From Macrostomum hystrix (Eukaryota; Animalia; Platyhelminthes): DNA of 64,000 bases. Made by a program: the position numbers and the translations under genes. Location of the stretch: the NCBI GenBank assembly GCA_950097015.1, contig CATNEN010000005.1:5580001-5644000 (forward strand). Reading direction: 5' to 3'. The notes beneath the pieces are model-generated. The model was not told the origin of the DNA and searched no databases. It saw only the letters and a list, made by a program, of their open reading frames with translations. Each line of letters begins with the position of its first letter. The stretch's first letter is position 1. Positions 2,233 through 64,000 of this stretch are shown piece after piece.

Positions 2233-2257
2233 CAAAAAGCACAAAAGTACTCAGGCG

Positions 2258-14901: not shown

Positions 14902-15053
14902 GCCTTCCGCTAGAAATGAAATATCTATCCTAAGAATGAAATGAATGTCTCCCACTACACTTGCGGCTCTCCCTCTAAATAGTATCAAGGGGGGAGAAGG
15001 GGGGAAAGAGAAGGGGAGGGGGGAAAAATGGGAAGGGAGGAAGTTCCTCGATC

Positions 15054-16961: not shown

Positions 16962-16981
16962 ATCCCACCCCGGTGCCACCA
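16962..16981 (-). promoter_or_regulatory. PBS of A1, variant of a tRNA-Leu PBS
   Basis: TGGTGGCACCGGGGTGGGAT, 2 nt after the LTR CA. Confidence 0.8.
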
Positions 16982-16983
16982 TT

Positions 16984-19314: not shown

Positions 19315-19798
19315 CATGATTCAAACTCTGGTGTAGCCATGATTTAGTCTCTGGTTTAGCCATGATTCAGACTCTGGTTTAGCCATGATTCAAACTCTGG
19401 TTTTGCCATGATTAAGACTCTGGTTTAGCCATGATTCAGACTCTAGTTTAGCCATGATTGAAACACTGGTTTTGCCATGATTCAGACTCTGGTTTAGCCA
19501 TGATTCAAACTCTAGTTTAGCCATGCTGATGATGATGGTTTAGCCATGATTCCGACTCTGGTTTAGCCATGATTCAAACTCTGGTGTAGCCATGATTTAG
19601 TCTCTGGTTTTGCCATGATTCAAACTCTAGTTTAGCCATGATTCAGACTATGGTTTTGCTATGATTCGAACTCTGGTTTAGCCTTGATTCAGACTCTGGT
19701 TTAGCCATGATTCAGACGCTGGTTTAGCCATGATTCAAACTCTGGTTTAGCCATGATTCAGACTCTGGTTTAGCCATGATTCAAACTCTGGTTTAGCC
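19315..19798. repeat. 23-bp satellite, continued
   Basis: About 20 tandem units of the repeat at 1-138. Confidence 0.95.
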
Positions 19799-24660: not shown

Positions 24661-25655
24661 AGACAGGCAATGAGCCTGTGAGCGCTAGCTGAGCTTATAG
24701 CTCTAAGTCTGAACTCTAAGTGGGGGGAAATAGGTCCGGAAGATCCGTCGGGGGAAGACGGGTCCACCAAGTTTAAAGTGGAAAAGAAGGTCCTAGGGGG
24801 AGCAGCGCAGCGCGCTTGCTTAAATAGTCCTGCAGCACGCCAACCTCGGCATTCATCAAAACCCACATCCGCGCCAGCCTGTCATCGAGGAATCGAAGCG
24901 GCGATGGCCACCCCGATTACCCAATGAACCGGCGGCGAGAAACGACAGATGCTCCTTTACGAGCAGCCGCCGGCAGTCGGCCAATAATTGTTACTCCGCG
25001 GGAACAATGGGAAGCGCAGGCGCCGACCTGCCTACAGTGACATTTACATGTATCTAAGAGAGGAGGTCATAAAGTCGAGCTGGGCTCGGGTACACTAAAG
25101 AAGCGAGGACATGAAGAATTATTGATCACTCATAACGCCCGAGTGATTCCCGATATCTGATCGCGGTTTGGAGGGGAATTATGACCTAAGCTAGCTTATA
25201 CAGGCTCCGGCCGTTTTCTCCTTGAGTCCGAGGGGTCCGGCCGTGCTCTTCCCAGGTGGTTCCAGATTGGTTGTCCGTTTGCGCCCTCGCTAATGCCGTT
25301 GCCGGGGCTTGGTAGCCTCTGATTCGCCGGGCGCCCAGGTGTTCCCGGCTGGCCGTGCCCGTAAATTCTCGCCGGGCCAGTTGCCTAGCCGTTGCGCGCG
25401 GTCCAATCGGCGCTGCAGCTGGTCGCAGCTGGGGAAACCGCTGCTCAAACCGCTCAGTGATGCTGGTGTCGGCCGCTGGATCTCCGCACCGAAAAGGTCA
25501 GGGCCCCAACAACTAAACTGTTACTATGGGCCCCCTATGCTGGATTTTCTTAAATTTCCATCTGACTTCCAATTGGTCGGCGCTCCCGCCACCATGACCC
25601 CTAATCTAAGTGCTATAAAAACAGCCACTTAACGCCCCATTAAACCCAAGCGTTG
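24660..25655 (-). mobile_element. Family A third-subfamily fragment: partial LTR fused by deletion to the internal GC block and antisense promoter
   Basis: Matches LTR sequence 18530-19080, then the internal region 11920-12355. Confidence 0.85.
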
Positions 25656-28357: not shown

Positions 28358-29230
28358 TTTCTGTGCGGCTGAGCTGCGCCAGAGGCAGCTGGCTGGTCGG
28401 AGGATCTTCTTTCACTCCGACAGTCAAGCAGCCCTCAAGGCCCTCAGTCGCTGCACCTCTCGCTCCAGAACCACCTTGGACTGCAACACCCAGTTAAACG
28501 GTTTGGCGCAGTCTAACAAGGTGGAGCTGATGTGGATCCCTGGGCACGCCGGGCTCACAGGGAATGAGATGGCGGACCAGCTTGCAAAGGCTGGAGCAGC
28601 CAGCTCCCTGATGGGCCCGGGCCCGGAATCCCCGATCCCCATCTCCGTTGTCAACTCCAGCATCAACCACTGGATGGAGACCCAGCACCGGAGGAGGTGG
28701 TCTAGCACCCTGAACTGTCGCCAGTCCAGGGCTGCGGTGCCAACCCCCTCTAGCAACCTGCGTAAGGCCTTACTCAGGCTAAACCGCAGAGACCTGAGAG
28801 CAGTCACCATGGCCCTTTCGGGACATGGCTGCTTCACCAGACACCGCTACCTCCAAGGCCACGTGCCTGAGGAAACGTGTCCCTTCTGCTGCTCCGGCCG
28901 TGAAAACGCCGAGCATTTCATCTGCCACTGCCCGGCTTTCACCCGGGCTAGGCTAAAGCACCTCGGGCCGGCACCGACTCTTGCCGAAGCCTGCTCGCCC
29001 GAGAACATCCCACAGCTCGCCCACTTCCTCCGGGATACCGGCCGAGCTGATTTCTTCCCAGCCTATGGCGAGGAAGATCGCGCGGCGGAACCGACCGACG
29101 GACCACCCTGAGCGGCACCGCCTCGCTGGAGGCCGTCTGGCTGCCAGGGGTTAGCGATATGGGCGGCACCAGCCGCCTCCTCGCTGCGTCCGTCATGGAG
29201 GCCCCCTGCCGCTAAGTCAAGTAAGTCAAG
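28358..29230 (+). mobile_element. 5'-truncated RNase H-bearing LINE (RNase H, C-terminal zinc motif, short tandem tail)
   Basis: [37 protein letters not shown]...[10 protein letters not shown]; tail (TAAGTCAAG)2. Confidence 0.88.
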
Positions 29231-34651: not shown

Positions 34652-37600
34652 ATGTCATCTCGACAATGTTATGAAAAACGTCATATAAAGAAATTTCTTC
34701 TTGACCAGGATGAAGATTCAATTCAAAGTGTGTTATTTGATAATGAGGCTTCCAATAGTTCTTTACTACATATTCCAAGTACCACACTGCAATTAACTTC
34801 AGAATTGTTATTACAACCAAAAAATGACCTCAAACCTAGTGAACATGAATTGGAATACAAAGAGGTAGACAATAACAGTGACTGCTCTTTTGTATCAGAT
34901 GCTAAAGAATCTACAGATTTTTCTGATGAAGAGTATGACATAGAAAGTGACATAAAAGATTGGGCATATAAATTTAATATCAGTGGTAATGCTTTAAGTC
35001 ATTTACTAAAGATTTTAAAGAAGCAAAATCCTGAATTACCTGCTGATGCTAGAACTTTGCTAGAGACAACCAGGAAAAGAAAAGAAATTAATGCCATTGT
35101 TGAAGTATTTCCTGGCAAATATTGCCACTTTGGAGTTAAATCCGGTTTGCACTACATTTTGTCAACTGTTAAAGACAATTTTAACTTATATAACATGCAA
35201 TACTTGACTCTTTCATTGAATATTGATGGTGTTCCTCTTTTTAATAGTTCTGTAGCCGGATTCTGGGTCATTTTAGGTGCAATAAATGAAATTGCAAATT
35301 CAGTTTTTGTTATTGGCATTTATCATGGCCAAAACAAGCCAGATTCAGCAAACATGTTTTTAAAAGAGGTTTGCAAAGAGCTTAGCATTATTTGCAATGA
35401 ACCCTTTTGCTTTCAAAACCTTCAGCTATCATTTTCATTAAGATGGATTATTTGTGACCTTCCTGCAAAAAAATAAGTGAAGAATACTGTGGGAATCACT
35501 GGTTACAATTCATGTAACAGATGTTTTACTCATGGTCAGCATTGTCATAAATCAAGAAGCATAGTCTTTCCTGAGACAAATGCAGAAAGAAGAAGTAATG
35601 AAGCCTTTCATGAACGATTACAAGTTGAGCATCACCATGGTCTATCAGAATTTGAGCTTTTGCCAGTTGACATGAATTATGCATTCACCATGGATTCTCT
35701 TCATCTATATATATAAAAGTGAAAACTCTGTCTGTCTGTGTGTGTGTGTGTGTGTGCAACCTTTTGTCTTTATAGACGCCGAAACCGCTCAACCAAATCG
35801 CACCAAACTTTGCACATACCTAAAACCACCTACGCTGAGTGCAATAGGCTACTCAAATTCCTGAAAAATCATTTCCTTCCTGCTCAAAAGTGCAAAAAAC
35901 TGCTCAAAAATCGTCAAAAAATCACTCAATTCGACATATCGTCGCCCCACTTTGTCAGATTTTCTCCAAATTTGATCCACTTACACTTTACATGTTTTCC
36001 AACAATGCTGTCAATTTTGAACATCTCTACTCAATCCAGAGCAAAGCTGCATCATCTCAAAGTGAGTCACTTTTTGTTTTCCGAGGACAGCCACCCCAAC
36101 TCTCCTCCGCCACTCTGCGGGCCAAATTTTATTACAGCCACCCCCTCCCTTCCCCGGGCGCCGGAACCCCAGACTGTACATTGTATTTCAAGCCGTGAAT
36201 GTACACAGCCCAAACCCCTAAACTGTCTACTGGCCCCCAAGCAGCACTGAGACTGTGCGGTGAGTGCGGTGGCGTCCCAGTGCGCAGGGCTCTCCGGTCG
36301 ATATTTCTCTCCAGCCAGCCTGGGATAGAAGAAAGAGAGAGGCCGCTCAAAGGCCACAGGACACTACTCTTACTGCTTTCTTCAAGTTGTGCGCTGAAGA
36401 CCCCTTTGCCAGGACTTTGCTGTACCACCAGGTGCCTGCCTATTACACATGGAACGCCTCTTCGAAAGGATGGAAGCGGCGGGTTCAAGGCGCTGCAGTT
36501 CCGGGCCATCCTGAAATACGACAGACTGATGCATTAGCCAGAGTGTACACGGTGCACCCAAACCGCCGCGAATGCTACTACCTGCGTATATTGCTACACA
36601 CCGTGATTGGTCCGACGTCATTTAGACACATTAGAACGGTGGAAGGCCATACCTGCCAAACTTTTCATGAAGCATGTCAGCGACTGGGACTGCTGGAAGA
36701 TGATGCTCAATGGAGAGCGACATTGGAGGAAGCGGCAACGGTGCGCTCACCAAGTCACCTGCGAGATCTCTTTGCCATCATGGTTGCCACCTGTGGTCTC
36801 TCTGATCCACTTCAGCTTTGGGAAACATTCAAAGAACCCATGGCCGAAGACATTCTCTTCCGGGCGCGATTCGTGGCTCAGGAGCCAGAGTTGCCATTCA
36901 CAGAAGCAGTGTTTAACGAGGCCCTGCTGCGCATTGAGGACAAGGTGCTGGAGTTGACCGATCGCTATCTAGATTCTTTTGGACTCCCAAAAGCAAACAG
37001 AACAGGACAACAGGACAACCTGTGCAGGAAGATGCTGCGAGAAAGAGGCTATGACCAGGAGCAGCTGGGACAGTTCATAGAGGAGAATGAGCCCCGACTC
37101 ATGCCTGAGCAGCTAGAGGCGTACCGCGAGCTATTGCGCAGAGCCAGTCGCAGCACTGGCGCCCCTTTTCGGCCGCTGGCGCCCCTTTTTCAGCCGCTGG
37201 CTCCCGTTTTTCAGCCGCTGGCGCCCTTTCTTGGCTCCTGGCGCCCTTTTTCGGCCGCTGGCACCCCCTCTGTGATTCTCATGGCGCTCCCCTGACAGAC
37301 CGCCCCAAAACAAAATTCCTGGATCTGCCACTGACTGTATAGAGGAGTGGCTAAGAGACATGTTTCTAAAGAAGTAATCAAGAGGGGGCTGTTTGGACAA
37401 ACTTTTCACTTATTTTTTACTTAAAACGCCCTTAAACAAACTCTTCACTTTTCATTAATGCAGTAAATAAATAAATGGTGACCTTCACTATAAAGTTAAT
37501 ACAGAGACGTGAATTGCTTACTGCTTTGCTTTAAATTTCTGCCCCAAAAACAACGGGCAAAAAGGCTAGTATTCTATATAAAGGTGTTGCACTTAAAGCA

Positions 37601-38317
37601 TTGTTGCTACTGTCAAGTAAAGGTCCACTACAGTTCCGAATTGGTGAACCTGGTCAGATTGAGTTGAGTAAACTCCTTGATCAAATTGGAAATTTTGTAC
37701 CATCTGATTTCCAACGGAGGCCAAGAGCCTTTAAGCATATCAGACTCTGGAAAGCAACAGAACTCCGCTTCTTTGTTATTTACCTTATACCACTTGTACT
37801 GCCTCGCTTTGTCAGAAACCAAAGGCTTATGGATTTGTTTCTATGCCTGCATTTGCTTGGTATACTTCTAAACACAGAAGATATCATTGATAATCAGCAC
37901 CAGATTCTAGAAAGAATTCTTCAAGCTTTTTATTCTTGTGTAAATGATTTGCTTGGGCCCAGCTTCTTCAGTCCAGTTGTTCATGGACTTCAACATCTTG
38001 TAGAAGATTATAAGCTTCATGGGTGCATAGAAAAGTTTTCTTCATTCTCTTTTGAGAACTTTAATAGGTATATTAAAAAAGCTGTCCATTCACCACATTT
38101 GCCTCTAGAGCAACTTGCCAACCGTGTCTCTGAAACAAACCCATGCCTCAAACGACTGACTATAGATAATGCTACATTTCCAATCATCAGCAGGCAGTAC
38201 TTTTCCTGTTCATTTAAGTTGCCAGAGTTGCTTAGTCAATTTTTGATGTACAAGCAAGTGCAACACAGCAAGGACTTGTTCCTCTCACTTAAGCAAAGAG
38301 ATTCCTTTTTTGTATAA
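34652..38317 (+). pseudogene. CACTA/EnSpm-like transposase split by a Helitron
   Basis: NIDGVPLF, ICDLPA, GYNSCNRC. Removing 35704-37569 restores MDSLH-ILYKGVALKALLLL in frame; then RRPR, KATELR, FSFENF. One stop at 35474. Confidence 0.85.
35704..37569 (+). mobile_element. Non-autonomous Helitron (1.87 kb) carrying a RepHel fragment (36340-37150)
   Basis: Inserted between A and T; 5' TCTATATATATAAAA; 3' hairpin TGCCC...GGGCA then CTAG; no TSD. Confidence 0.92.
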
Positions 38318-38835: not shown

Positions 38836-39620
38836 ATGTTTTTTCTTGTCGAGTTTTGCGACGAAGAAGATAGTCCTGTTGCAATTGTGCCCTCAACATG
38901 GGTCTCTGGCAATGAAGTTGCATTTCCACCTAGGCAACTTTACAAAAAAATAAATGAATTATGCCGTGACCAATCGGTGCCTTCCTCTCAATGGAAGCTG
39001 TTTAAGATAAACATACTTACCGAAGGCGGTAAGACAAATATTTTTTCTTTATTATTAGAAACTTGTGTTGTAATTTTATTGTCTCCCTCGCTTTTTCTGC
39101 ATAACTTTAGATGACTTGGACAGAATGCGAACGCTCGAGCGCAGGTTTTCGATAAAAGGCACTTTTAGCGAAAGTGAATCGGAGGGTCCCCGAAAACGGC
39201 TGGCTCCTGCTAGACTTCTAGAAGAGTACCAACCGGTTCAGAAAGACCTTGTCGCGGCACAGTTTCACCCGATTCATTTTCATCTAGCTCGTCTGCAATG
39301 CAACTTGGTCATACGCTTGGATTTTCGTTCAATGATATTTGCAGTGATTCAGTAAATCATGCGACTGCCGCTGCAGCTTTCGCGTCGCCGCAGCAGACCA
39401 GCGAGACCACACGTTCAAAAAATACTGCTGCTAGCGCCGCTGCAGCCTTTGCGTCGCCGCAGCAGACCAGCGAGACCACACGTTCAAAAAATACTGCTGA
39501 TAGCGCCGCTGCAGCCTTCGCGTCGCCGCAGCAATGTTCTGCCACATCACATAACGAGAACTTCGATCCGGCATTCCAGTTTCGCCACTCAGAGATGAAT
39601 TCATGTCAGTGTGCCAGCAT
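38836..39620 (+). pseudogene. Second, multi-exon gene of the CACTA-like element
   Basis: MFFLVEF...AIVPSTW...FPP pattern, short GT-AG introns, and a ~60-bp internal repeat at 39365-39535. Confidence 0.45.
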
Positions 39621-40961: not shown

Positions 40962-41772
40962 GAACCTTTTGTTTGCGCGCTGGCCCGACCCTCTGGTACC
41001 GTTGTCATGCGCCATCGTTGACCAAGGGGTCTATTTTATTCAGCTCGCGGTCTGTGTGATTAATAATTTTCTCTGACTGATGTTGACTTGTTCTTGTTGT
41101 TGTTCTATTGTTCTAGTAGTTTGTTTGTGCTTGTTTTCGATTGAAAAGTAAATAAAAGGTGACCTTTTATTTATATTTATAAATAAATAAAATTATTTTA
41201 TTTATTTATTTATAAACAAAAACTTACCTGTTTTTGGTTTAAGTGCGGCTGACGGCCAGCCGGTGTTGACCGTCATCCTTTAGCTGGAGGAGAGTGATGT
41301 GCTGTAGACTGCTGAGCAGCCTCCAGGCAATCCGTGAGTCAGGTTGTTCTAGGTCTGTGGGAGGGCTGGGGTGTAGGTAGTTAGTGTTTCCCGTGCACTG
41401 TCACTTCCGCTCGCCACCCCCTCCGCTTTCTCTCTCGTTCCAGCTCTGTCTGCGCACTGAGTCACATTGCACACCATGGTGCAATCGCTTAAGTTCGGAA
41501 GAAGACTGGCAGAACAACGCTCAAATGCTCCTACTATAAGTAGGGCACAGTCCAACGAATCCTTGAGATGGTGTTAGTATCGTGGTAGCACTATTTCTTT
41601 ATATTGATTGCACTGTGTGTACGGAAATTTCTTCATGCGTTTGCGATTCACGTTGCCTTTTACGTTCCTTCGCATCCGAGACAGCAATCTTTTTTGGGAA
41701 ACTAGGTTATATACTGCATTTCGAAGCAGAGTATATAACCCGTTTCAGTAGAGTCATTAGAGTTAGCCAAAC

Positions 41773-44081
41773 TGAAATAGGTGCGGGTTTTGCAATCCGA
41801 TGACCTGTCCTCAAGAGAGAAAAGGAGTGTGGGAATGGCGATAGAGTCAGGAGTCGTACCGCAAAGCCTCGCGATTCGTCGCGGGAGGCGGGATGAAGGG
41901 AGAGATGAAGGGAGAGACAGTGGATGCAGGGAGTGGTCCTCTCGGCCTCAGGCTGGCCAGTCCCACTCAACCCATAGGCCACAGGCATGACTGCCGTGCC
42001 TACCCCAAGCAGTGCTCGAAACCGGCTAAAGTCTAAAGAGATATCGGACTACCCGCAAGCAGGTAGGACAGGGCTAGATAGCCTACTGTCATCAGTAGCA
42101 TGTACATAACTGACTCCTAACAGTGGTAGCAGTGGTCGATTCGGCCCAGGCTCTTGTCTTAGAAATGCGGAAAGGCTATTGGCAAAGCGGAAAATGATCT
42201 AGGGTAGCGCCACCACCCAATGCGCCTACGTTGCCACCGCAGACATTTGGGAACTTGGGTCCCCGGAGTTCACAGCTCCTAGTTTGTCACACAGATCTCA
42301 GACAAGCCGAAAAATAGGGCATTCTGTAACTTCCGTTTTAGACTAGGGCGGAGACCCCAGAATGAATCGAGACACGCCTCAACAGGGGATTCCTGAAACT
42401 GCGCTACAGTGGTCTAGAAAGGTGGTACTCCGAACTCGAATGAGAAACCCATAGCCGGAATCCTACTCATGAAACATCAGGCACATTCCTTACATTAGAT
42501 TGCAGCCTACACATTAAATAACTAGCAAATCCGAATCTGTGTGAGATGAGGAAATCAGAGGCAGGAGAGATTAGGCAGAACACTGGCTGAGTGATTATGC
42601 AAGCGATGATTATTAGATCACACCCCTCGCTCCCATGGCGGCGGCAGCGAGAGGCGGGGGACAGAAGGGAAACATTAATTGACAAGGGAGGTTGACACGC
42701 ACTCCTTGATCTGCCAGAAAGAGAGGAAAAACCCGCCAAGGAATTCCCCCACCCCTAGCAGAGAAATACATGCTACGCTCCGCATATTACTCGCAAATCC
42801 CTAGCTCCTTATTACTTTCATGCGCGCTCACAGTTACCCTCCTGCCGCAGCTTTCAGCTAGGCATCACCAGAGCCCATCCCCTAATGAGTTAGCCACTCA
42901 TGGTTGAGGGCTGTCTAACGATAAAATAAGAGAAAGTGAAATGCATAGTAAAAAGGATTTAAGTTGTTATTAAATTGCCAATAAGTTAGATAAACTGTGA
43001 TTTAATAGTTTATTAGGCTAAATCAAATCCCTGCCCTTGCCCTTATTACCCACTAGCTAGATAGTAAATCCCTTAGGGATAACAATAAAAGTCCGCTGCG
43101 CGGGTTACTTATCTGCGATGCTGGTTGACAGGCTGCAGGCCGTTGTTCTCGCTGGGAAAGGGCAATTGAAAGAGGAAGCAGGGACGGGGGTGTCTAGTGC
43201 GATCGGCAAGGGGCCAAATCGCAGGAGCACACGGCTCAATTGGAGCTCACCCAAAAAGGTGGCTTAAATGCTCAGGGGCTATGCAGGTAATTTACCTGCG
43301 GCTGTTCTGAGGAGCCTTAGGCTCAGGGGCTAAGTCCTATCTAGTAAGGGGGAGAGTCCACGGACCGTGTTCCGGGACCAGACAGGAAGGGGGGTAGGTT
43401 TTAGTCCAGGGTGGAGGGTCCTGGGAAGGGTCCGGAGGAAGGTTGTCCTAGGGGCAGCGCAGCGCGCTTTCTTAAATAGTCCTGCAGCTCCGTCAACCCC
43501 GCATTCATCAAAGCAACCCACATGCTCGCCAGCCTGTCAACGAGGAATCGGGTCGGCATTATGCCACCCCAATTGCCCACTGAAGCGGCGGCGAGAATCG
43601 CCAGATGCTCCACTAGGAGCGTCTGCCGGCAGTCGGCCAATGATTGTGATCCCGCCGGGATATGGGAAGCGCAGGCGCCGACCTGCCTATAGTGTCGTTA
43701 CATGTATCTAAAGGGGGAAAGGTCATAATCGAGCTTCGGCTCGGGTTACAGTAAAGAAAGGGGACATGAAGAATTAATGCTCACTCTAGACGCATGAGTG
43801 ATCCCTACAATCTGATCGCGGTTTGGAGGGGAATTATGACCTAAACTAGTCCATACAGTATTGCTATGCCCGCGATCAGTCACTCCTACAGGGGACTAGA
43901 CAGATCCGAGACAAGGGGAATCGGCGGCTACTTAATTCACCTCCGCCCCAAGTCTGGCCCTAAGATTAATGATGGTGTTCTGCGGCCAGCTGCTATGTGG
44001 GTCGCGATTATTGACTTGCTAAAAATGGAAAAATTTGGCTGGCTCACAACCCCACTCGATTCCGAAGTACACTCCACATCA
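41773..44081 (-). repeat. 3' LTR of A2
   Basis: TG...CA; matches 50581-52889. Confidence 0.95.
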
Positions 44082-45019
44082 CACCGCCTTCGCTCACTTT
44101 CACGTAAGGCACTTACGTGCTTACTGTCAGTAGTGGGGTGTTTCGCGAATCGAGGGGCAAAGAAATTTACATTACCCTACTGCATACCGTAAAGAATCCT
44201 AAGAAGAAAACCGCTAGAGAAGAAATCCTAGGTTATCGTACGTAAAATACTGCTATAACTAGATTTGTGCGAGAGTAAAAAAACGGTCGGCGCCCCTAGC
44301 GACTAAGGGATAGAGTCCTGAGGGGAGGTGGGTGCGCATTCCGGCTGAGTTAAAGTTGTTCTCGTTGCCCAGGGGTGCCGTGTCCCGGCTCGCCTTCTCC
44401 TCCAGGTGGCTGCAGCTGTCCCCGTCTTTCCTTGCCCGGCTTGGTCTTGGTTGCGCAATCCCGGGAGGCTCCGGCCGTTTTCTCCTTAAGTCCGAGGGTC
44501 CGGCCGTGCTCTTCCCCAGGTGGCTCCGGGTTGGTTGGTCCGTTCGCGCCTTCCCGATTCCGTTGCCGGGCCGTGGTAGCCTCTGATTCGCCGCGCGCCC
44601 AGGTGTTTTCAGCTGGCCGGGCCCGAAAATTCTCGTCGGGCCGGTTGCCTAGCCGTTGCGCGCGGCCCAATCGGCGCTGCAGCTGGTCGCAGCTGGGGAA
44701 ACCGCTGCTCAGGCCGCTTGTGATGCTGTTGCCGGCCGAGGTGTCTCCTCACCGAAAAGGTCAGGGCCCCAACAACTAAACTGTTACCATGAGCCCCCTA
44801 AACCGGTTCTGCCCGGAATTCCCACTGTACTCCCATTGGCTGGCGGTTAGACCGCCACGTCTCCCTAAATTAGCCCTATAAAAGCAAACACTTGGCGCCC
44901 CATTAACCTCAAGCCTCTTTATCTCCTAAACAAACACCTTACCTACCGCTAGCTTGTCTGCAATCGCCACCTAGCCTGCGTCGCCCGACTAGCTAAATAC
45001 GTGCTCTGCTCCTTGTACT

Positions 45020-45707
45020 ATGGCCCAGCCGCAGTCTGAAGAAGAAAGGTGAGTTATTTGACTTCTACTCGGCCCCCCAAGGCCGGTTATTAAGGATAAT
45101 TGCGAGGGTTATGTCATAATAATTCAAGTAGTCAGAGTCCACCCTTACCCACGGCACCCCTAATTATCCCAACAACTTGAAATTGACCCCCGACCCGAAA
45201 CTGCGAAAAACCCTTCCCTAATTGAAACTTATTAATTGTAGGTAGTGTAAGTTTGTCATAGCCAACATCATGAATAATCACTACTTAATGCTGTTGCCAT
45301 CACCTAACTTTCACAGCTTTCTACCTGGGCCTTACGAACCCGTCCGGCAGCGATCTGGCTCAGGCGAGCCCATAACCATGTCCTTCATTATGAGTAAGTT
45401 AAATGCTTTTTGTCGTGCCCTCCCACTCACCCTGGGTACCACAAACTGCGATTCCCTCCTACGAATTACTGCTGGACCTTACTTTCCTCATGTCTATCCC
45501 GCCACGTTTCACCATTTGAGACTCTATTTGCTGCAACCCCATTTGCTCCTCCACCTTACTCCTGCAGACATCAACGTGCCTGAAGGTCGCGAGGCTGGAG
45601 TGGCCGCCATCGCGTATGTATTTCTGCGAGGCTCAGCCGGTCGAGTGCTCGGCGCGGCTACTGCCGTCGTGGCCCTGGTCGTGGCCATCACCTTATGGCT
45701 GTTTTGA
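45020..45707 (+). CDS. Three-exon small protein with a C-terminal hydrophobic segment, 81 aa (exons 45020-45048, 45317-45393, 45568-45707)
   Basis: TATA at 44877; introns in phases 2 and 1; ends ...VLGAATAVVALVVAITLWLF; AATAAA at 45799. Confidence 0.82.
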
Positions 45708-47048
45708 ATTACTCATCGGCGCCTGCTCGGCCTCTGTACTCACTCGGACTGTTCACCTGGTGCTAATTTGAAAACCCCTTTTTTTGTTTCTTTCTGTAAA
45801 TAAAAATAACGTGCTAAGGGATATGATTTGCTTCCGTGCCACCGTTTGAATGTGCAAAATGGAACTCACTATCTTTACCCGTCTTCTTTCCTCGATGAGA
45901 CATTACTGCTCAAGTTTTACAACCGCCTAGTAACCAAAAAAAACTAACTGATAGACTGTTAATGAGTTTTTGAAACGTCTGGAACCTTAATTCATACGAT
46001 TTATTACTATTCTACCCCTCCAGGTACCTAGATTTGAATGCCCAGCTGCTAACTTCTGGCTCCCCAAATAATGTTTCTTTTTGTCTTTTCTAGCCCTAAC
46101 AAAAGAAAAATTATCATTTTGAAATCTGTCGCTCATTGAAACAGCCAGATTGCCTCCCCTAGAATTTGAATACCTGACCCTACCGGCTTCTTGATTTACA
46201 ACCGCCCACTCCTTAAACAAACATTAAGCAAAACTCCCGAAACATACCACCCCGCTCACTTTAGCGGGTTGGTATACCCCCTAAATAGAAGCCGGCATAG
46301 CTAAACTCCCGAAACCAAACATAGAGAACATGTGAGATAAGCAACTTTAAGAAAAGTAGGTGCGAACCCTAGTTTGCGGCAGTTAATACGAAAATATTCC
46401 ATGTGAAAATTCTTACGAAGGGGAATTTCGCCCCACTAAGTATGTTTTTGGATTTTGATTAGTTTATATAAGTTTTTAAGAGGTTTTGGCGCCGAGATGG
46501 CTTTTTTGATTTGAACCGCCTTCCCTCCCTTAAAGAAAGCATAGAATTTCCCAAGGCATACCACCCCGCTCACTTTAGCGGGTTGGTGTCCCTCCTAATT
46601 TAGAAGTTGTCCTAAATTGAACTCCCACAGACCCACCAATATGAACAAGATAAGGCAGAGGTGCCATGCATGATGTGGTGCGATTAAAAGTAAAAATGCT
46701 CTTTGAGAAAAGAAGGTGCATACCCTAGTTTGCTACAATCAGATAAGCATCTCATGTAAAAAAAGTATCAGGGGAATTTCACCCCACTATGTGTATTTTT
46801 GTGGTTTTGGCTAAAATTATAAGAGTTTTTTTTGTGTGAGATTTTTGGCCAAGGCGGCTTTAGATGAAAAGGGAAAACATGCACAATAGGAAGAAAAGAA
46901 CAAACGGTGCAGAGTGCGAATGATTATTAAAGGGGGGAAGAAAAAGGAAAAGGACAAAGGGGGAACAGGGAACAAGGGCCTAGCGGATAGTGGTCCTGTT
47001 CCTACAATACTGCGGTCACTACCTCTATTGACCCTACCTAGCGCCTTC

Positions 47049-47630
47049 CTATTCTTCGGCCGCCTCCTTGATGGGCGTGCTTTCCGCCGGTCCCTCGCTA
47101 GCTTCTTCGCCTTCCATTTCTCTCACCATGCGGCCGAGCGTGCTGTCCCCGGGCGGTGGCTCTTCGGCGAAGCGATGTCCGTGGAGCCACTCACGCCAAT
47201 CCGGGTCTGCCGCTGACCGCAGGGGGGTCTCTGACACCCCGATCCGGCGCATGACCAGCTGGTGCTCCAATTCTTCCTGTCCTGGGATCCTTTTGGCTTG
47301 CAGCCAGGACGCGAGCTCGTCGGGGATGGTAATGCTCCAATCCTCTGGCGGGCTGTACTCCATCCACCGCAGGTTCCAAGGGAGGTTTGCCTCGTCTTCT
47401 CCCCTAGGCGGCAGAGGGTCCCGCTCTTCGCACCACGCCTGGGCCAGCCACCTAGATTCTGCCAGCTGGCAGGCAAGGGCGAGGTCAACGCCTGCTTGGG
47501 CCGCTCGTCCTATCATGGGTAACAGCCACAGGCGGACCATCAGCCAGGTCCTCTTCCCGGCCAGTTCGCGGCGATAGTCCGTGGCGGCCACTTCTAGCCA
47601 CCACGCCAGGACGGTGCCAAAGCTTGCCAT
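47049..47630 (-). CDS. Family A ORF3, 193-aa Trp-rich orphan with an acidic tail
   Basis: Intact and conserved with A1 despite many silent changes. Confidence 0.85.
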   Translation of the reverse strand: MASFGTVLAWWLEVAATDYRRELAGKRTWLMVRLWLLPMIGRAAQAGVDLALACQLAESRWLAQAWCEERDPLPPRGEDEANLPWNLRWMEYSPPEDWSITIPDELASWLQAKRIPGQEELEHQLVMRRIGVSETPLRSAADPDWREWLHGHRFAEEPPPGDSTLGRMVREMEGEEASEGPAESTPIKEAAEE

Positions 47631-47776
47631 GTCTAAACTAGTTTCCTCGTCTTTTAGTAAAATTTTCCCTGCTTAATTTTTCCGGCCCTTACTTAAATAA
47701 GCCGACAACTCGGGAAGGGGATGGGGTGGGCGAGGAAAGAAAATGGTAATTGACCCCAGGTCACGGTGACCCTCAT

Positions 47777-48325
47777 TTAAAATCTAGCCTTCCGCCTGAG
47801 TGAAAAGGGGAGGAATTGGCGATAGATGATTAAGTGGCGCGAGTCAAAGTCAACGATGGCATGATGATGAGCCAACCAGGAGGCACCGAGCAGGGGAGAG
47901 CAGTCGCCCTCAACCACTAAGAACACGGTGTCCAGCGCTTCGGTGCCAACCTGTAATTTGACCCTGACCTGCGCCTGTGCAACAATGGGTGTTCCATTAT
48001 AAGCAAAAAGAGAAAATTGCGGGGGTTCGAATGGATAGTGTTGAAAGATTGATGACAACGAGTCCGGGAGCACATTCACCATAGACCCTGTGTCAATGAG
48101 GAGGTCTAGGGGTGTCCCTTCCACTTCCAAGGCGACCCACACCTCACTAAGCTGCTCAGAGCGATTTGGGCGGGTTCGCACTCGGGTGGGGACTGGGCCG
48201 AGTGCATTCACTCGGACTTCTCGGCGGTCGGAGGCAGCAGCTGCCGCCGCTCCGACTGTCGGGCTGCGGGCTGGGTCTCGGGGCCGTGGGACTGCCTCCA
48301 ATTGGCGGCCCCGTTCCCATTTCCC
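47777..48325 (-). CDS. pro: Retropepsin aspartic protease, reached by a -1 frameshift from gag
   Basis: LLIDTGS, LLGASWL; slippery G GGA AAT at 48319-48325; stop right after the domain. Confidence 0.92.
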   Translation of the reverse strand, partial: GKWERGRQLEAVPRPRDPARSPTVGAAAAAASDRREVRVNALGPVPTRVRTRPNRSEQLSEVWVALEVEGTPLDLLIDTGSMVNVLPDSLSSIFQHYPFEPPQFSLFAYNGTPIVAQAQVRVKLQVGTEALDTVFLVVEGDCSPLLGASWLAHHHAIVDFDSRHLIIYRQFLPFSLRRKARF

Positions 48326-49245
48326 TTTTCCGACTTGGGGTTCGCCTCCTTAGCGGCCCCGTGCTCGACACGTTTGGGGAGCCACTGGTGTCCGGTTGGG
48401 TGCGGGCAAAGAGGGGGAACGAGGTTGGGCCGCGTATCCCGCAGCTGCTGGGAGACCTCAGCCAGCTGCTGAGTTACTTTGGCCAACTCCTCCGTTAGCT
48501 TATGCAGCGGCTCCAACTGGACCTGCTCATCGTCGGGCTCCGCTCTAATTTGGCGCACCCGCCGGCGAGGATCCCGCTCAACCGCCATTTCATGGGCCTG
48601 GGTGGCAGCACGCAGTTCGGCTGCGGCAGCCTCCGCCGTAGCGAACTCCATCCGCATGATGGGTGCCAATACTTCCGGTGGGGCCACGATCCCCTCCATG
48701 AAGGAGGCCAACAGGGCGCGCTCAAAGTGCACGCCCTGGCCGTTGGGGGTGGCCTGCAGGGCCGCTGTCCTTAATCTGTCGGCAAAGGCGGGGTATGTCT
48801 CATCCCGCCCTTGCTTCAGATTGCGCCCACTCAGTAATCGGGCGTAGGGGGTGCAGGCGCCACTGAGAATCTCAGTAAGGTCCTGCACGAACCTAAGGTA
48901 GGTCACCCGGCGGGGCAACCCTAACGCTTCGGTGAGGGGCTCGCCACTCAGGTGAGCGAGGAGGGTGAGGACTTTCTCTTCCTCGGATTCTACACCCTCC
49001 GCCTCCAGCTTCAGGTTAAATCGGCGAAGCCAGAGGGGGAAGGAATCTCTTCGGGACTCGAAGGGTTCGATAGAAACTTTGACCCGGTGGTTCCGGGGTC
49101 GTCGCACCTCTAGCCGCTCTAGAAGCAGCGCTAGGCGCTCCACAGGGTCGGCTTGCTGTGCTGCAGCAGCCGCTGGGGGTTCGGCGCGCGCCGCAGCTGC
49201 GGCGCGGCCTCTGGGTGGGCGGTTGACTCCAACCACTTCCACCAC
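48208..49245 (-). CDS. gag: Ty3/gypsy-type Gag capsid protein, 345 aa
   Basis: FPLWLRRFNLKLEAEG and LKQGRDETYPAFADRL resemble the retrotransposon gag core; no zinc knuckle. Confidence 0.88.
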   Translation of the reverse strand: MVEVVGVNRPPRGRAAAAARAEPPAAAAAQQADPVERLALLLERLEVRRPRNHRVKVSIEPFESRRDSFPLWLRRFNLKLEAEGVESEEEKVLTLLAHLSGEPLTEALGLPRRVTYLRFVQDLTEILSGACTPYARLLSGRNLKQGRDETYPAFADRLRTAALQATPNGQGVHFERALLASFMEGIVAPPEVLAPIMRMEFATAEAAAAELRAATQAHEMAVERDPRRRVRQIRAEPDDEQVQLEPLHKLTEELAKVTQQLAEVSQQLRDTRPNLVPPLCPHPTGHQWLPKRVEHGAAKEANPKSEKGNGNGAANWRQSHGPETQPAARQSERRQLLPPTAEKSE

Positions 49246-50560
49246 CTCACCCTCCTGGTCGGAAATTTTCGGCCAAAAGAGGAATGAGGGTTTTGCGAAT
49301 GAAAAAGAGGGGGTCTGTCGCTAATGCAACAATGGGGGAGGGGAGGAAAGGAAAACACAGATCACGACTGGAGATCGTGCGGGGGGGGAAAGAAACGAGC
49401 CTGAGCTGTCAAGTCCAGCCCTGATTAATGATGCGGCGAAATCCCTACTCCTAGAGAGCAACCCTACCGCAAAAAGATCAAAGATCAATGAGAGAGAAAA
49501 GGGCCCAGGGCCCTGGCTAGCTTTGCTTCCAGCCTTGGCTACTGACAACTGTTTGCGCGCACTTAAGTTTGGGACATAGAAGTCTAGGTTTTAACTTAGC
49601 ACTCGTTCTGCAACCCTATAGCGGACTGTTGCACTATAGGTACGGCGGGGTCAGTACTACTGCAAGCTTGCGCCTGCAACAGCCTATCACCCTACCTTTG
49701 GAAAGTACACGCCTCAATAAGATACTCAGAGGAGGGATAATCCCCGACTCGTTCAGGGAGTCATCGATTCCCGGCTGCATTGCCGGGGGCCCCCTCGCGA
49801 TTTACGAGACTGGGAAGCCCAGGGGGGATATACCTGGGATCTCGCTCGGGTAGGAGTCCATGGCTAAAGCCTGGCTACCCCATTTAGAAACCCCCCAGAG
49901 AATCTCTTAGAAAAACGTGCCGACCGAATTCTAGCCCATACTTGAAGTAGGCAGCTTCGAGAGGCGGGCACGGGGGTCGCTAGACCTCCCTCAAAGCCCC
50001 ACCTCCTTAACTGTTCCCCACCAAAGTCAGACTTAGTCAAAGTTATGTGACACTTTCAAAATCAGGTACACGTAAGCAGGCCTGTATGCTGCCCAAGAGA
50101 ACCAATCCCCGGTGCTCGGCGAGTCATCGATTCCCGGCTGCATTGCCGGGGGCTCCCCTCGCTCGGTTAGAAGGCCGAAAGGCGTTGCCCGGTCCCTCGT
50201 TAAGAATGGCCCCTCCCAGATCAGACACGCGGGAAAACCCCACAGACAGTCCCTGACTCCTGCAGCAGCCACTAACCCGAAGACACTCTAGCATGAAGTC
50301 CGCTCACACAGCCTACTCATAGTAGAAAGTCACTAATCAGAATTTTGGAAACTCTAACAAAAGCCTAAATTAAATTGAAAACAAATTGCAACTGTTCGGA
50401 AATTAATTGACAGTCACTAGAACTGAGATTCACTATTTAGAGATAAGATTTCGGCATACGGAAAATGAAATCTAGAAGGAGCCCTTTCGGCTAGCTACCA
50501 CAGAAATCTGCGGCGCTAAACTAACAATTGAAATTCAAGTTCGTTTCGCGCCCTTTCTAG

Positions 50561-50578
50561 ATCCCACCGCTGCCACCA
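50561..50578 (-). promoter_or_regulatory. tRNA-Leu primer-binding site
   Basis: TGGTGGCAGCGGTGGGAT is complementary to the metazoan tRNA-Leu 3' end ATCCCACCGCTGCCA-CCA. Confidence 0.9.
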
Positions 50579-50580
50579 TT

Positions 50581-52889
50581 TGAAATAGGTGCGGGTTTTG
50601 CAATCCGATGACCTGTCCTCAAGAGAGAAAGGGAGTGTGGGAATGGCGATAGAGTCAGGAGTCGTACCGCAAAGCCTCGCGATTCGTCGCGGGAGGCGGG
50701 ATGAAGGGAGAGATGAAGGGAGAGACAGTGGATGCAGGGAGTGGTCCTCTCGGCCTCAGGCTGGCCAGTCCCACTCAACCCATAGGCCACAGGCATGACT
50801 GCCGTGCCTACCCCAAGCAGTGCTCGAAACCGGCTAAAGTCTAAAGAGATATCGGACTACCCGCAAGCAGGTAGGACAGGGCTAGATAGCCTACTGTCAT
50901 CAGTAGCATGTACATAACTGACTCCTAACAGTGGTAGCAGTGGTCGATTCGGCCCAGGCTCTTGTCTTAGAAATGCGGAAAGGCTATTGGCAAAGCGGAA
51001 AATGATCTAGGGTAGCGCCACCACCCAATGCGCCTACGTTGCCACCGCAGACATTTGGGAACTTGGGTCCCCGGAGTTCACAGCTCCTAGTTTGTCACAC
51101 AGATCTCAGACAAGCCGAAAAATAGGGCATTCTGTAACTTCCGTTTTAGACTAGGGCGGAGACCCCAGAATGAATCGAGACACGCCTCAACAGGGGATTC
51201 CTGAAACTGCGCTACAGTGGTCTAGAAAGGTGGTACTCCGAACTCGAATGAGAAACCCATAGCCGGAATCCTACTCATGAAACATCAGGCACATTCCTTA
51301 CATTAGATTGCAGCCTACACATTAAATAACTAGCAAATCCGAATCTGTGTGAGATGAGGAAATCAGAGGCAGGAGAGATTAGGCAGAACACTGGCTGAGT
51401 GATTATGCAAGCGATGATTATTAGATCACACCCCTCGCTCCCATGGCGGCGGCAGCGAGAGGCGGGGGACAGAAGGGAAACATTAATTGACAAGGGAGGT
51501 TGACACGCACTCCTTGATCTGCCAGAAAGAGAGGAAAAACCCGCCAAGGAATTCCCCCACCCCTAGCAGAGAAATACATGCTACGCTCCGCATATTACTC
51601 GCAAATCCCTAGCTCCTTATTACTTTCATGCGCGCTCACAGTTACCCTCCTGCCGCAGCTTTCAGCTAGGCATCACCAGAGCCCATCCCCTAATGAGTTA
51701 GCCACTCATGGTTGAGGGCTGTCTAACGATAAAATAAGAGAAAGTGAAATGCATAGTAAAAAGGATTTAAGTTGTTATTAAATTGCCAATAAGTTAGATA
51801 AACTGTGATTTAATAGTTTATTAGGCTAAATCAAATCCCTGCCCTTGCCCTTATTACCCACTAGCTAGATAGTAAATCCCTTAGGGATAACAATAAAAGT
51901 CCGCTGCGCGGGTTACTTATCTGCGATGCTGGTTGACAGGCTGCAGGCCGTTGTTCTCGCTGGGAAAGGGCAATTGAAAGAGGAAGCAGGGACGGGGGTG
52001 TCTAGTGCGATCGGCAAGGGGCCAAATCGCAGGAGCACACGGCTCAATTGGAGCTCACCCAAAAAGGTGGCTTAAATGCTCAGGGGCTATGCAGGTAATT
52101 TACCTGCGGCTGTTCTGAGGAGCCTTAGGCTCAGGGGCTAAGTCCTATCTAGTAAGGGGGAGAGTCCACGGACCGTGTTCCGGGACCAGACAGGAAGGGG
52201 GGTAGGTTTTAGTCCAGGGTGGAGGGTCCTGGGAAGGGTCCGGAGGAAGGTTGTCCTAGGGGCAGCGCAGCGCGCTTTCTTAAATAGTCCTGCAGCTCCG
52301 TCAACCCCGCATTCATCAAAGCAACCCACATGCTCGCCAGCCTGTCAACGAGGAATCGGGTCGGCATTATGCCACCCCAATTGCCCACTGAAGCGGCGGC
52401 GAGAATCGCCAGATGCTCCACTAGGAGCGTCTGCCGGCAGTCGGCCAATGATTGTGATCCCGCCGGGATATGGGAAGCGCAGGCGCCGACCTGCCTATAG
52501 TGTCGTTACATGTATCTAAAGGGGGAAAGGTCATAATCGAGCTTCGGCTCGGGTTACAGTAAAGAAAGGGGACATGAAGAATTAATGCTCACTCTAGACG
52601 CATGAGTGATCCCTACAATCTGATCGCGGTTTGGAGGGGAATTATGACCTAAACTAGTCCATACAGTATTGCTATGCCCGCGATCAGTCACTCCTACAGG
52701 GGACTAGACAGATCCGAGACAAGGGGAATCGGCGGCTACTTAATTCACCTCCGCCCCAAGTCTGGCCCTAAGATTAATGATGGTGTTCTGCGGCCAGCTG
52801 CTATGTGGGTCGCGATTATTGACTTGCTAAAAATGGAAAAATTTGGCTGGCTCACAACCCCACTCGATTCCGAAGTACACTCCACATCA
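50581..52889 (-). repeat. 5' LTR of A2
   Basis: TG...CA, 2309 bp. Confidence 0.95.
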
Positions 52890-53060
52890 AAACACAGGTT
52901 AACTAAGAAGGTACGAGAAAACTTGCAATCTAAGCCTGACTACCAGATTGCTCCACTGCGACGACGCACCAGTGTTGAGGCCGGAAAAGATCCTCTCAGA
53001 ATCTAGTTCCTGTCTTGGTCATTTCACCAATTGTGTGTGCCACGCTACCACAGGTACAAC

Positions 53061-55252
<2,192 letters not shown>

Positions 55253-55799: not shown

Positions 55800-56950
55800 A
55801 CCTGGATGAAGATCCGGAGGCCACCGCATATGCAGCCCTCCAGCCCGGATTTTATTAATTCGAGAGCAACTTCAAGAACTGCATCGCCTGTTCGACGTTC
55901 GTATGCTGAAGCCTGCAGCCAAGGTTCCTTCGAGCAACTGGACGCAGTCAATCAGTCATCGCCGCCGCCTGTGCAGTTAAATGTTGAGACTACGACAGGC
56001 GTGGACAACATGGAGTCCCAGCCTTGCCGTGTCGATCTGACCGATTTTCTAAAACCACCGGTGACCCGTGAGCAACTCATCGCAGCCCAGCGGGCCGACC
56101 TGGCCATTAATTTTGTGCTCAATCTTGTCGAGAACAACGCCCCGAAGCCGAAGTTCGACGACCGGTTGCGACTAACTCGAGATCAACGAAATCTACTTGG
56201 CTACTACGAGAATCTCCGTGTAGAAGACGGCCTACTGGTGATCAACCCGGATAACGACTGACAGTCATCAAGGATCGTCTTGCCCGAAGCTTTCGACGTC
56301 CAGGTGTTCCAGAGCGCCTCATCGCTGAGTACGGAGTTCCCTGCTGGATCCACACGGACCAAGGGACCAACTTCACCGGATCCGCCTTCAAGAAGTTTTG
56401 TGACTTGTACGGGATCCGACACACGGAGTTCCCTCACGGACACGGACCACCACGCCATACAACCCAGCCTCCAATGGGCAAGTCGAGAACCTCAACAAAC
56501 AGCTGAAGAGTATGCTGACTTGCCTCTTAGAGCGAGACCACCGCGACTGGGATACCTTCCTCCCAGCCTGCTTAATGGCGCTGCGCTCCGCTGTCCATCA
56601 GGTGACGGGCTATACGCCAGATTTCCTAGTCTACGGCAGAGTTTCGTCTACCGATTGACAACACCCTAAAGAAGCTGCCGGAGTACGACAACCTGCCTGA
56701 GTATGTCAAAGACTTCCAACATCGACTCGACGAAGCGACCAAGCTAGCCAAAAACCGACTGGCCCTACGTCCCAGTCCACCTCCGGATCGGCCATCCGGC
56801 GGCGTGTCGCGCAGCTCGAGAAAACGTGCCGGACGTAGGCCGACGTATACCAATCAGCCTGCCTAACCGTCGGCTGACCAGCTCTACCCCCCCGGCCTAC
56901 GCCGCCGGTGGAGGATGACAACCCGGTCCTACAAGGGATCCGCAGGATCC
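55800..56950 (+). pseudogene. Deleted gypsy pol/integrase fragment
   Basis: REQLIAAQRAD...LRVEDGLLV; VENLNKQLKSML; DWDTFLPACLMALRS; TGYTP. Confidence 0.7.
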
Positions 56951-58555: not shown

Positions 58556-59014
58556 TGATGTGCTGTAGGCTGCTGAGCAGCCTCCAGACAATCCGTGAGT
58601 CAGGCTGTTCTAGGTCTGTGGGAGGGCTGGGGTGTAGGTAGTTAGTGTTTCCCGTGCACTGTCACCTCCGCTCGCCACCCCCTCCGCTTCCTCTCTCTCG
58701 TTCCAGCTCTGTCTGCGCACTGAGTCACATTGCACACCATGGTGCAATCGCTTAAGTTCGGAAGAAGACTGGCAGAACAACGCTCAGATGCTCCTACTAT
58801 AAGTAGGGCACAGTCCAACGAATCCATGAGATGGTGTTAGTATCGTGGTAGCACTATTTCTTTATATTGATTGCACTGTGTGGACTGAAATTTCTTCATG
58901 CGTTTGACTCCAATCCTTTTTGGCAAACTAGGTTATATACTGCATTTCGAAGCAGAGTGTATAACCCGTTTCAGTAGTCATAAGAGTTAGCCAGACATAG
59001 GTTAACCAAGAAGG
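58556..59014. repeat. Element B fragment (copy 3) containing the empty A2 target site
   Basis: Matches 41295-41772 joined to 52894-52912. Confidence 0.88.
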
Positions 59015-61914: not shown

Positions 61915-62841
61915 ATGGCCGGAATCAACGACGCCATCGGTCTATTAGCCGAAGAACTGCGAAACAGATTAGAACTAGGACCACTAAGACATGTAAAAAT
62001 ACAAAAATTCACGCCCAGCCAAGACATAAGAATCTGGCTGACAGCTTTCGACCAAAGGTGCGACACGGAAGGAATCGATGAGGACCACCGAAAGCAAGAG
62101 TTACTGGCCAATCTAGACCTATCAACTGCTTTCGCCGCCGTCCAAAGACTGAACCTACCGGAAGAACTCACTTATGACGAGTTTAAGGAAAGATTAATTG
62201 AGAGATTTGGAAGACTGGGAAACTCCAGCGAATTCAGGGAAGAGTTCAGAGGTCGGATGCAAGGTCGTAATGAACCTACCGACGCGTTTGCCGACGTCCT
62301 GATTGAACTCGCAACCCGAGCCTTTCCGAACATGAATGGTGAACAGAGAGAAGAGGAGGTAGTGGAGCAATTTATCAAGGGAGTCAGAATTCCAGCGGAC
62401 ACCCGTGAAAAGCTGATATTTACCCAGCCCGCCAACCTCCAGGAAGCTCGTCGTATGTTGCGCAGGATCGAAGCAGCCTGGCATATGTCTCACAAGTCAA
62501 GCGGTGTCCGAGCTGTTAAGAGTGAGGAGGATCGCCAGCTTGATAAATTTGATCTCATCATGAGAGAACAACAAATCGAGATTGAGAGACAAAAGCAGGT
62601 TATTCAAGAGCTGAAACAGCGGATTGAAGAACAACAACAGTCACAGCCACAACCGCTGATGAGCCAGCAATTTCAGCCCAGATATCCTGGAAACTCACAG
62701 TACCGACCCACGCAGGGACCGCATAACTATGCCAACAGCAGGGGCAGAGGTGGTGGTCAGCCTGGGCCAATGAGAGCTGGACATCAGTACAGTGTGAGCC
62801 GTCCACCCCAGTCCCACCGGAACCTGGCCTCGGGAAACTGA
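61915..62841 (+). CDS. gag: Gag, 308 aa
   Basis: Intact ORF; DIRIWLTAFDQRC, RMQGRNEPTDAFAD. Confidence 0.9.
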   Translation: MAGINDAIGLLAEELRNRLELGPLRHVKIQKFTPSQDIRIWLTAFDQRCDTEGIDEDHRKQELLANLDLSTAFAAVQRLNLPEELTYDEFKERLIERFGRLGNSSEFREEFRGRMQGRNEPTDAFADVLIELATRAFPNMNGEQREEEVVEQFIKGVRIPADTREKLIFTQPANLQEARRMLRRIEAAWHMSHKSSGVRAVKSEEDRQLDKFDLIMREQQIEIERQKQVIQELKQRIEEQQQSQPQPLMSQQFQPRYPGNSQYRPTQGPHNYANSRGRGGGQPGPMRAGHQYSVSRPPQSHRNLASGN

Positions 62842-64000
62842 GTGCCGAGGTGCGGATGAGGCCACGCCCCTCCAGTCAAGTCCCAGCGAACGTTCAGGCC
62901 TCCCAGTTTCGAATTCCGTCCCAGTACAAGTTTTGCTATCCTCGCAAAACGGTACCTGTCTGGAAGGCATGTAAAAACAATGCGATCACACATCATGTGA
63001 TTCCAACATCACCAAATGCGTTTGCGTTACTAGCACCCAATGCGTCAGCACCCAATGCGTCAGCACCCAATGCGTCAGCACCCAATGCGTTAGCACCCAA
63101 TGCGTCAGCACCCAATGCGTCAGTACCCAATGCGTCAGCACCCAATGCGTCAGCACCCAATGCGTCAGCACCCAATGCGTCAGCACCCAATGCGTCAGCA
63201 CCCATTTCCTCAGCCCCCAATGCATGTGATTTTTCCAAAATTGAGAGAAAACCCTGCAAAGCAAAGATGGCGATAAAGAAATCTGCCCCCACAGCCAAAG
63301 TGGAGCTGACCAAGCTGAATGGCTATGAAGCAGTCATCGCTGGAAGTGTCAAGAACCAGTCAGTAGACTTCCTACTAGACACTGGAGCTAGGAACAACTT
63401 CCTTAGCAAATCGACATGGTCAAAAATCTTCAAACCAGACCAAATTCAAGAGACAAACAAGAGAGTGTCCACATTTGATGGTACTCAGGTACAACTAGAA
63501 GGAGAAGTCACAGCTAAAATGAGATTCGGCGACATCAAATTGGAAGTAGAATTCTTGCTTTGTCAGCATGATTGTGACGACATTTTAGGAATGGAGTTCT
63601 TTCTTAGTCACTGTGAAAGCATCCACCTTGCTAAGGGCATGTTGGTACTGAAGAGAGGTACCTGTGTTCCTATGAAGTACACTCGCCTGCCAGTTCGAGT
63701 TTGCCGGGTATATACCCAAGAGAGAGTTGTAATTCCGGCTAATTGTGCACTCAGAATTCCAGTGAAACTCGCCAGAAACAGTGAAGCCAACTATGGCACT
63801 CCTATGACCATCGAGACTATTGGAGATGGAGTGAGAACTAAAGAAGTAACTCTGGAAATGGCACCGACTCTGGTCACGATGCAAGAAGGAGTTGGAATCG
63901 TTGAGATCGTGAATCAACATGCAGTCGATGTCACCCTGTCGAAGTCAGCACTAGTAGGATTGGCGAAACCCATGAAAGTGCAAGAACTTACCTATTGGCA
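62832..64000 (+). CDS. pol: Pol N-terminus via -1 frameshift; protease; open to the window end
   Basis: G GGA AAC at 62832-62838; the -1 frame has no stop in the part read; FLLDTGA and ILGMEF. Confidence 0.85.
63033..63212 (+). repeat. 15-bp coding tandem repeat (SAPNA) x11-12
   Basis: GCACCCAATGCGTCA units, in frame with pol. Confidence 0.95.

Follow-up and report, generated by a model that had tools for sequence, protein, structure and literature searches.

An LTR retroelement family of Macrostomum hystrix with Gag, a protease and an orphan gene under selection and no reverse transcriptase or integrase

How can a long terminal repeat (LTR) retrotransposon persist without a reverse transcriptase (RT) and an integrase (IN), and what keeps its remaining genes in place? 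This question is raised by an element, here called A2, in a 64-kb stretch of the genome of the flatworm Macrostomum hystrix (assembly GCA_950097015.1, contig CATNEN010000005.1, positions 5,580,001 to 5,644,000), which is referred to as the window and in whose coordinates all positions are given. A2 occupies positions 41773-52889 on the minus strand (11,117 bp) and carries open reading frames (ORFs) for a capsid protein (Gag), a protease (PR) and a third protein (ORF3), and none for RT, RNase H (RH) or IN. A second full copy, A1, represents a sister sublineage. The best explanation, to which a probability of about 0.72 is assigned, is that A2 is a recent insertion belonging to a non-autonomous LTR family of Ty3/gypsy descent that lost RT, RH and IN before the two sublineages separated and has used the enzymes of helper elements since.

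The boundaries and repeats of A2 were read from a self-comparison of the window. Two direct repeats of 2,309 bp, each starting with TG and ending with CA, differ at one position; the repeat at 50581-52889 is the 5' LTR, since the genes of A2 lie on the minus strand, and that at 41773-44081 is the 3' LTR. A 4-bp target-site duplication, AAAC on the plus strand (41769-41772 and 52890-52893), brackets the element. A paralogue of the insertion site without A2 (58556-59014, plus strand) crosses the site uninterrupted with a single 4-mer, AGAC, at about 58.99 kb, and thereby fixes the bounds of the insertion. A site resembling a primer-binding site (PBS) begins with TGG 2 nt past the 5' LTR (50561-50578, minus strand), and its first 8 nt are common to A1; a tRNA scan of the window detected no tRNA gene with which the site could be compared. 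A purine-rich 20-mer (44082-44101, minus strand), kept in A1, abuts the 3' LTR at the position of the polypurine tract (PPT). Its structure marks A2 as a genuine LTR retrotransposon of recent insertion, and the near-identical LTRs, the 4-bp duplication and the nearby empty site described in an earlier sequence-only reading of this DNA were all recovered, the empty site being a paralogous one. The sequences flanking A2 are similar to two widely separated segments of a long interspersed nuclear element (LINE) at 2233-11295 (3285-3675 with 41223-41614 and 58556-58877; 11134-11294 with 52905-53060), which indicates that the insertion took place within or next to a rearranged copy of this repeat. 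A run of ORFs in AT-rich DNA (53015-55252, plus strand), the second of two in the window, adjoins the element.

No remnant of RT, RH or IN was detected in A1 or A2. In tblastn searches with two full-length pol proteins from relatives, one of which includes an integrase, the protease was the only match in both copies. The remaining internal sequence of A2 (44082-47048, minus strand, about 3 kb) is non-coding; its PPT-proximal 850 nt are about 83% identical to A1, and its centre could not be aligned. On the sense strand of 44082-47049 no ORF was longer than 106 amino acids and no Pfam match was obtained. The claimed absence of RT, RH and IN was thus confirmed, and since it has neither RT nor integrase, the A2 family must be copied by the enzymes of another element. 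An antisense membrane gene, which had been proposed within the non-coding region (45270-45707, plus strand), did not survive analysis. A hydrophobic tail is present and nothing else speaks for this ORF: it does not align with A1, in which tblastn found no counterpart, and shuffled sequences gave an ORF of equal length in 4.4% of cases, so that it is probably a chance ORF. That the LTRs or the non-coding block on the 3' side contain coding sequence was also considered and rejected; no periodicity was observed, and in the sole segment with p=0.02 the peak fell on a first position in the codons of the local ORF.

The Gag frame of A2 (48208-49245, minus strand, 345 codons including the stop) is predicted to encode a two-domain capsid of the Ty3/Arc type. 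Only weak matches to Pfam were obtained. A full HMMER search (phmmer) of 1.84 billion representative proteins returned 11 distant relatives with a best E value of 9e-13; each is a Gag protein that has Retrotrans_gag and CCHC domains, two come from Macrostomum lignano, and the best match lies on a transcript-like contig, where it is followed by an ORF for PR, RT and RH. An AlphaFold (AF2) model of Gag, built from a 12-sequence alignment, was confident across residues 60-225, and its best matches in the Protein Data Bank (PDB) were all retroelement capsids (PNMA2, Arc, dArc1, MLV and Ty3). The search results and the model indicate homology of A2 Gag with the capsids of Ty3/gypsy elements or Arc. 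On the metagenome contig of a distant Gag relative (positions 2382-6905 of that contig), pol contains a NADAR domain between RH and IN and is followed by a third ORF of 618 amino acids.

The protease ORF (47777-48301, minus strand) is read in the -1 frame with respect to Gag; it contains D-T-G and L-L-G motifs and is classed as a retropepsin. Its match to Pfam (E value 7e-5) was below the curated cut-off, and a pairwise comparison with the PR of a relative's pol gave 25% identity with an E value of 5e-8. Descent from Ty3/gypsy elements is suggested by Gag and PR alone, RT, RH and IN being absent. A candidate slippery heptamer for -1 frameshifting, GGGAAAT (48319-48325, minus strand), lies in frame with Gag, some 115 nt ahead of its stop codon. 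A1 has the equivalent heptamer GGGAAAC at the same place, and from there the -1 frame is open in both copies.

ORF3 (47049-47630, minus strand, 193 amino acids) occupies the place of RT. It is separated from the protease by a spacer (47631-47776, minus strand) with a long pyrimidine tract, which is present in both lineages with differing sequence. The start ATG of ORF3 is common to A1 and A2 and stands in good context (A at -3, G at +4). The product is rich in tryptophan, acidic and predicted to be helical. An hhalign comparison of ORF3 with the Gag profile gave no match, and neither did comparison with pol or the extra ORFs of relatives.

A1 extends from 138 to 19315 on the minus strand, with an internal region at 11524-16983, one LTR at 16984-19315 and the other at 164-2232 and 11296-11523, the latter being split by the 9-kb LINE at 2233-11295. 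Gag (15502-16529), PR (15054-15595), ORF3 (14326-14901; all minus strand) and non-coding sequence follow each other in the same order as in A2, and ORF3 is 83% identical to its A2 counterpart over 189 amino acids. Because its LTR halves differ at only 3 of 2,297 positions (99.9% identity), A1 is a young insertion too, and the earlier description of it as an old copy had to be replaced by that of a diverged sister lineage with five disabling lesions. The identity of A1 and A2 is 77-86% in genes and LTRs; as both are young, they must represent diverged sister lineages. A truncated third copy (24790-25651, minus strand) consists of an LTR piece and an internal piece.

A1 and A2 differ at 36-55% of synonymous sites. 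The ratio of nonsynonymous to synonymous divergence (dN/dS) was 0.13 for Gag (dS 0.98), 0.20 for PR (dS 0.49) and 0.094 for ORF3 (dS 0.78), while wrong-frame controls gave 1.2-2.4, and a pile-up of mismatches at third codon positions was limited to the Gag, PR and ORF3 frames. These ratios indicate strong purifying selection on all three genes. The shared architecture and the selection across both lineages imply that pol was lost before A1 and A2 separated and that the three genes have been maintained since; the same pol-less order Gag-PR-ORF3 in lineages this far apart agrees with what the sequence-only reading had concluded and not with two independent deletions.

For ORF3 the low divergence might instead be caused by an overlapping plus-strand ORF (47068-47577) or by an RNA element. 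That ORF shares its third codon positions with ORF3, so that periodicity alone cannot separate the two strands here, and its own dN/dS is also low (0.20). The minus-strand frame nevertheless has the lower ratio and a well-placed start codon kept in both copies, whereas A1 retains only 94 codons of the plus-strand frame and has two in-register stops in it. An origin of the signal outside the ORF3 frame is therefore regarded as very improbable.

The leader that A2 shares with A1 (50074-50580, minus strand, compared with 16475-16983) is 97% identical between the two, and its first 200 nt are 99-100% identical. Within the LTR, a block of about 500 nt (50912-51411) shows 89-96% identity between the lineages and the remainder 52-85%. 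This mosaic may be due either to tightly constrained cis signals or to recent recombination between the A1 and A2 lineages, which would imply co-packaging. The Gag frame of A1 is opened by an ATG in the leader. The same ATG with the first codons is present upstream in A2, where a single A2-specific stretch of about 0.9 kb, absent from A1, parts it from the long Gag frame. Just 5' of this ATG, a hairpin with a 6-bp GC stem and a 6-nt loop containing TGCA (50116-50157, minus strand) is kept in A1, and a second copy of it (49753-49794, minus strand) lies inside the A2-specific stretch; the hairpin might act in dimerisation or packaging. The predicted fold of the leader was unexceptional (z -1.35), and an Rfam scan of the window gave no match.

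Conservation in the leader and in parts of the LTR far exceeds that at synonymous sites, as would be expected if cis signals are what counts, and A1 and A2 were recently inserted although both are damaged as coding units. Such features would also suit a passenger of the LARD type, which is moved entirely by the Gag-Pol of a helper and would have no further use for its own Gag, PR and ORF3. Yet dN/dS values of 0.09-0.20 in three genes, over a synonymous divergence of 0.5-1.0, cannot be a mere residue, since frames that serve no purpose would have decayed in A1 and A2 alike; the slippery heptamer is kept in both. A gene-independent passenger is thus considered unlikely, and since all three genes have stayed under selection, Gag, PR and ORF3 must raise the transmission of the element that encodes them.

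The preferred explanation, a non-autonomous family with working structural genes, can be put as a sequence of steps. A full-length RNA started in the 5' LTR would serve as genome and as mRNA, and Gag would be translated from it as a two-domain capsid protein. Frameshifting by -1 at GGGAAAY, aided by a downstream stem, would produce a minority of Gag-PR fusion protein. For ORF3, translation would probably start at its own ATG, perhaps on a subgenomic RNA; the pyrimidine tract lies upstream of it. Once packaged by way of the highly conserved leader, the RNA would be copied and inserted by the RT, RH and IN of a helper, and insertion would create the 4-bp duplication. A copy whose genes are damaged, as in A1, could still ride on the proteins of intact siblings. 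The family may reasonably be supposed to build its own particles and to borrow the Pol of a helper.

Several observations weigh against this explanation. Both full copies sampled are imperfect coding units. In A2 the first in-frame ATG of the 345-codon Gag frame is found only at codon 183, and the description of the element as intact was dropped for this reason. In A1 all three genes are broken, Gag by one frameshift and one stop, PR by one frameshift and ORF3 by two stops. From the divergence of its LTRs, about 1.4 changes of any kind would be predicted in the 2.1 kb of A1 genes, compared with the five disabling lesions observed; most of these lesions therefore probably predate the insertion, and A1 would have been carried by the proteins of other copies, which for its part speaks for the explanation. 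The GC-rich stem about 6 nt past the heptamer was only modestly better than shuffled sequences (z -1.9 and -2.6), and its minimum free energy pairs differ between A1 and A2. Of the frameshift-regulated protease proposed earlier, the GGGAAAY heptamer in the 0 frame and the open -1 frame held in both lineages, and the downstream stem proved a weak point. A2 Gag has no CCHC knuckle, which is present in 9 of the 11 aligned relatives. In Ty3/gypsy Gag proteins this zinc knuckle is usual and not obligatory. For ORF3 no homologue was found in Pfam, PHROGs, PDB sequences, a word-indexed protein search or a metagenome scan, and a single-sequence AF2 model (predicted confidence, pLDDT, 42) was too poor for a fold search. 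The census of the family amounts to two full copies and one fragment within the window; word-indexed protein searches with Gag and ORF3, exact-protein look-ups and two metagenome scans yielded no further copies or homologues. Finally, no helper was identified. The sole autonomous element in the window, a Ty3/gypsy element at 61.9 kb termed G1, was considered for this role, which is unsupported; its Gag is 27% identical to that of A2 (E value 2e-13), and its PBS is a different one.

Among animals, the LTR elements ETn/MusD and VL30 of the mouse are moved in trans by a relative with coding capacity. In this the A2 family would resemble them; ETn and VL30, unlike A2, have no functional genes of their own. 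Closer parallels are known from plants. Numerous non-autonomous derivatives of the Ty3/gypsy element ATHILA in Arabidopsis contain only gag and protease (PMC11735389), and subfamilies 1.4 and 1.5 of wheat Fatima (RLC_famc1) have only gag and protease ORFs, for which mutual complementation with an RT/IN subfamily was proposed by the authors (PMC6097303). The statement in the sequence-only reading that the non-autonomous elements known were Gag-only ones is therefore outdated. Like the A2 family, the ATHILA derivatives are of Ty3/gypsy descent, keep gag and protease and lack RT, RH and IN; they differ in their plant host, in having a recognisable autonomous parent and in carrying no new conserved gene in the place of pol, whereas the A2 family has no recognisable parent and a selected orphan ORF3 after the protease. 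Fatima likewise keeps gag and PR and obtains RT and IN from elsewhere, as the A2 family is supposed to do, but is a Ty1/copia element of a plant with a known partner subfamily. The A2 family is accordingly grouped with the gag-and-protease derivatives of the ATHILA and Fatima type, from which it is set apart by its host, the missing parent and ORF3.

The ATHILA derivatives have been described as arising by recurrent deletion (PMC11735389), and A1 and A2 could have done the same if an autonomous family that shares their LTRs and Gag persisted and repeatedly spawned pol-less copies. However, A1 and A2 share their content after the protease, namely ORF3, the pyrimidine-rich spacer and the PPT-proximal block, despite a divergence of 17-23%. 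ORF3 in the place of RT is itself under selection, and no Gag closer than 29% identity to that of A2 was found among the 1.84 billion representative proteins. Repeated deletion from such a parent is judged slightly less probable still than the LARD-like passenger, and a single loss of pol before the two lineages separated is preferred.

Other non-autonomous LTR elements retain less. TR-GAG elements of plants, as cited in PMC13570524, are non-autonomous and have gag only; they share the kept capsid gene with the A2 family, which has a selected protease and ORF3 in addition and is distinguished by its length of 11 kb and its 2.3-kb LTRs. LARDs and TRIMs are defined as non-coding elements with LTRs, PBS and PPT that are moved in trans, and tandem or re-arranged copies of them are common (PMC13570524); the A2 family differs from them by its three selected ORFs. 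Such copies may bear on the odd 3' end of A1. No target duplication was found for A1. It sits in a satellite array of 23-bp units (1-163 and 19315-19798) whose register continues unbroken from one side of the element to the other, and beyond the 3' LTR of A1 the start of its PBS and leader recurs as a 26-nt copy. A1 may have inserted in an unusual way or may be left over from a tandem arrangement.

In M. lignano, autonomous Ty3/gypsy elements of the Mag, CsRN1 and Gmr1 clades carry PR, RT, RH and IN (10.1101/2024.12.18.629116). Autonomous Macrostomum elements of this kind are the likely pool of helpers. As the M. lignano survey mined LTR elements through RT (10.1101/2024.12.18.629116), pol-less families would have escaped it, and no paper on non-autonomous LTR elements in the genus Macrostomum was found. 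Non-autonomous LTR elements are usually viewed as passengers without genes, and surveys that start from RT miss them, which points to a blind spot of RT-based annotation of transposable elements in flatworm genomes. The interest of the A2 family lies in ORF3 and in the long-term selection on the structural genes of a pol-less element. Since three genes of this lineage are selected as strongly as many host genes, structural proteins can pay their way even in a parasite's parasite. A broader view, put forward here tentatively and held to be doubtful, is that the family is a long-lived, capsid-encoding satellite retroelement of an animal, which has done without RT, RH and IN across a synonymous divergence of 0.5-1.0 and whose selected capsid, frameshift-dosed protease and ORF3 enable its parasitism. 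Were this correct, ORF3 might recruit the Pol of the helper into satellite particles or bias packaging towards its own leader, and such a role could explain how satellites compete with their helpers.

The other elements of the window are only briefly described. G1 (61915-64000, plus strand) is truncated by the end of the window. Its Gag shares 71% identity with the M. lignano protein A0A1I8IYI7 (E value 3e-133), and about 13 units of a 15-nt tandem repeat (63032-63223) lie between its gag and protease. The LINE in the left LTR of A1 (2233-11295, plus strand), a non-LTR retrotransposon, encodes a CCHC knuckle, an endonuclease and RT, and its ORFs include a 2OG-Fe(II) oxygenase (AlkB-like) domain (5054-5908, E value 3e-16). 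Capture of AlkB has been published for an orchid Ty3/gypsy element (PMC9289625); no report of an AlkB-like domain in a LINE was found in the literature. An integrase fragment (56312-56643, plus strand), 39% identical to the IN of a relative, and an RNase H ORF (28476-29111, plus strand) come from other decayed retroelements. The runs of ORFs in AT-rich DNA at 34652-38317 and 53015-55252 (both plus strand), one of which has a weak DUF4218 match below the cut-off (E value 1e-4), possibly belong to a CACTA-like DNA transposon. The AT-rich blocks had also prompted the idea of a fungal genome affected by RIP, which was given up because long ORFs run through these blocks and the Gag of G1 matches a flatworm protein. 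Tandem repeats are present at 25839-26359, 39360-39566 and 20517-20757, two of the arrays having units of 69 nt and one units of about 18 nt.

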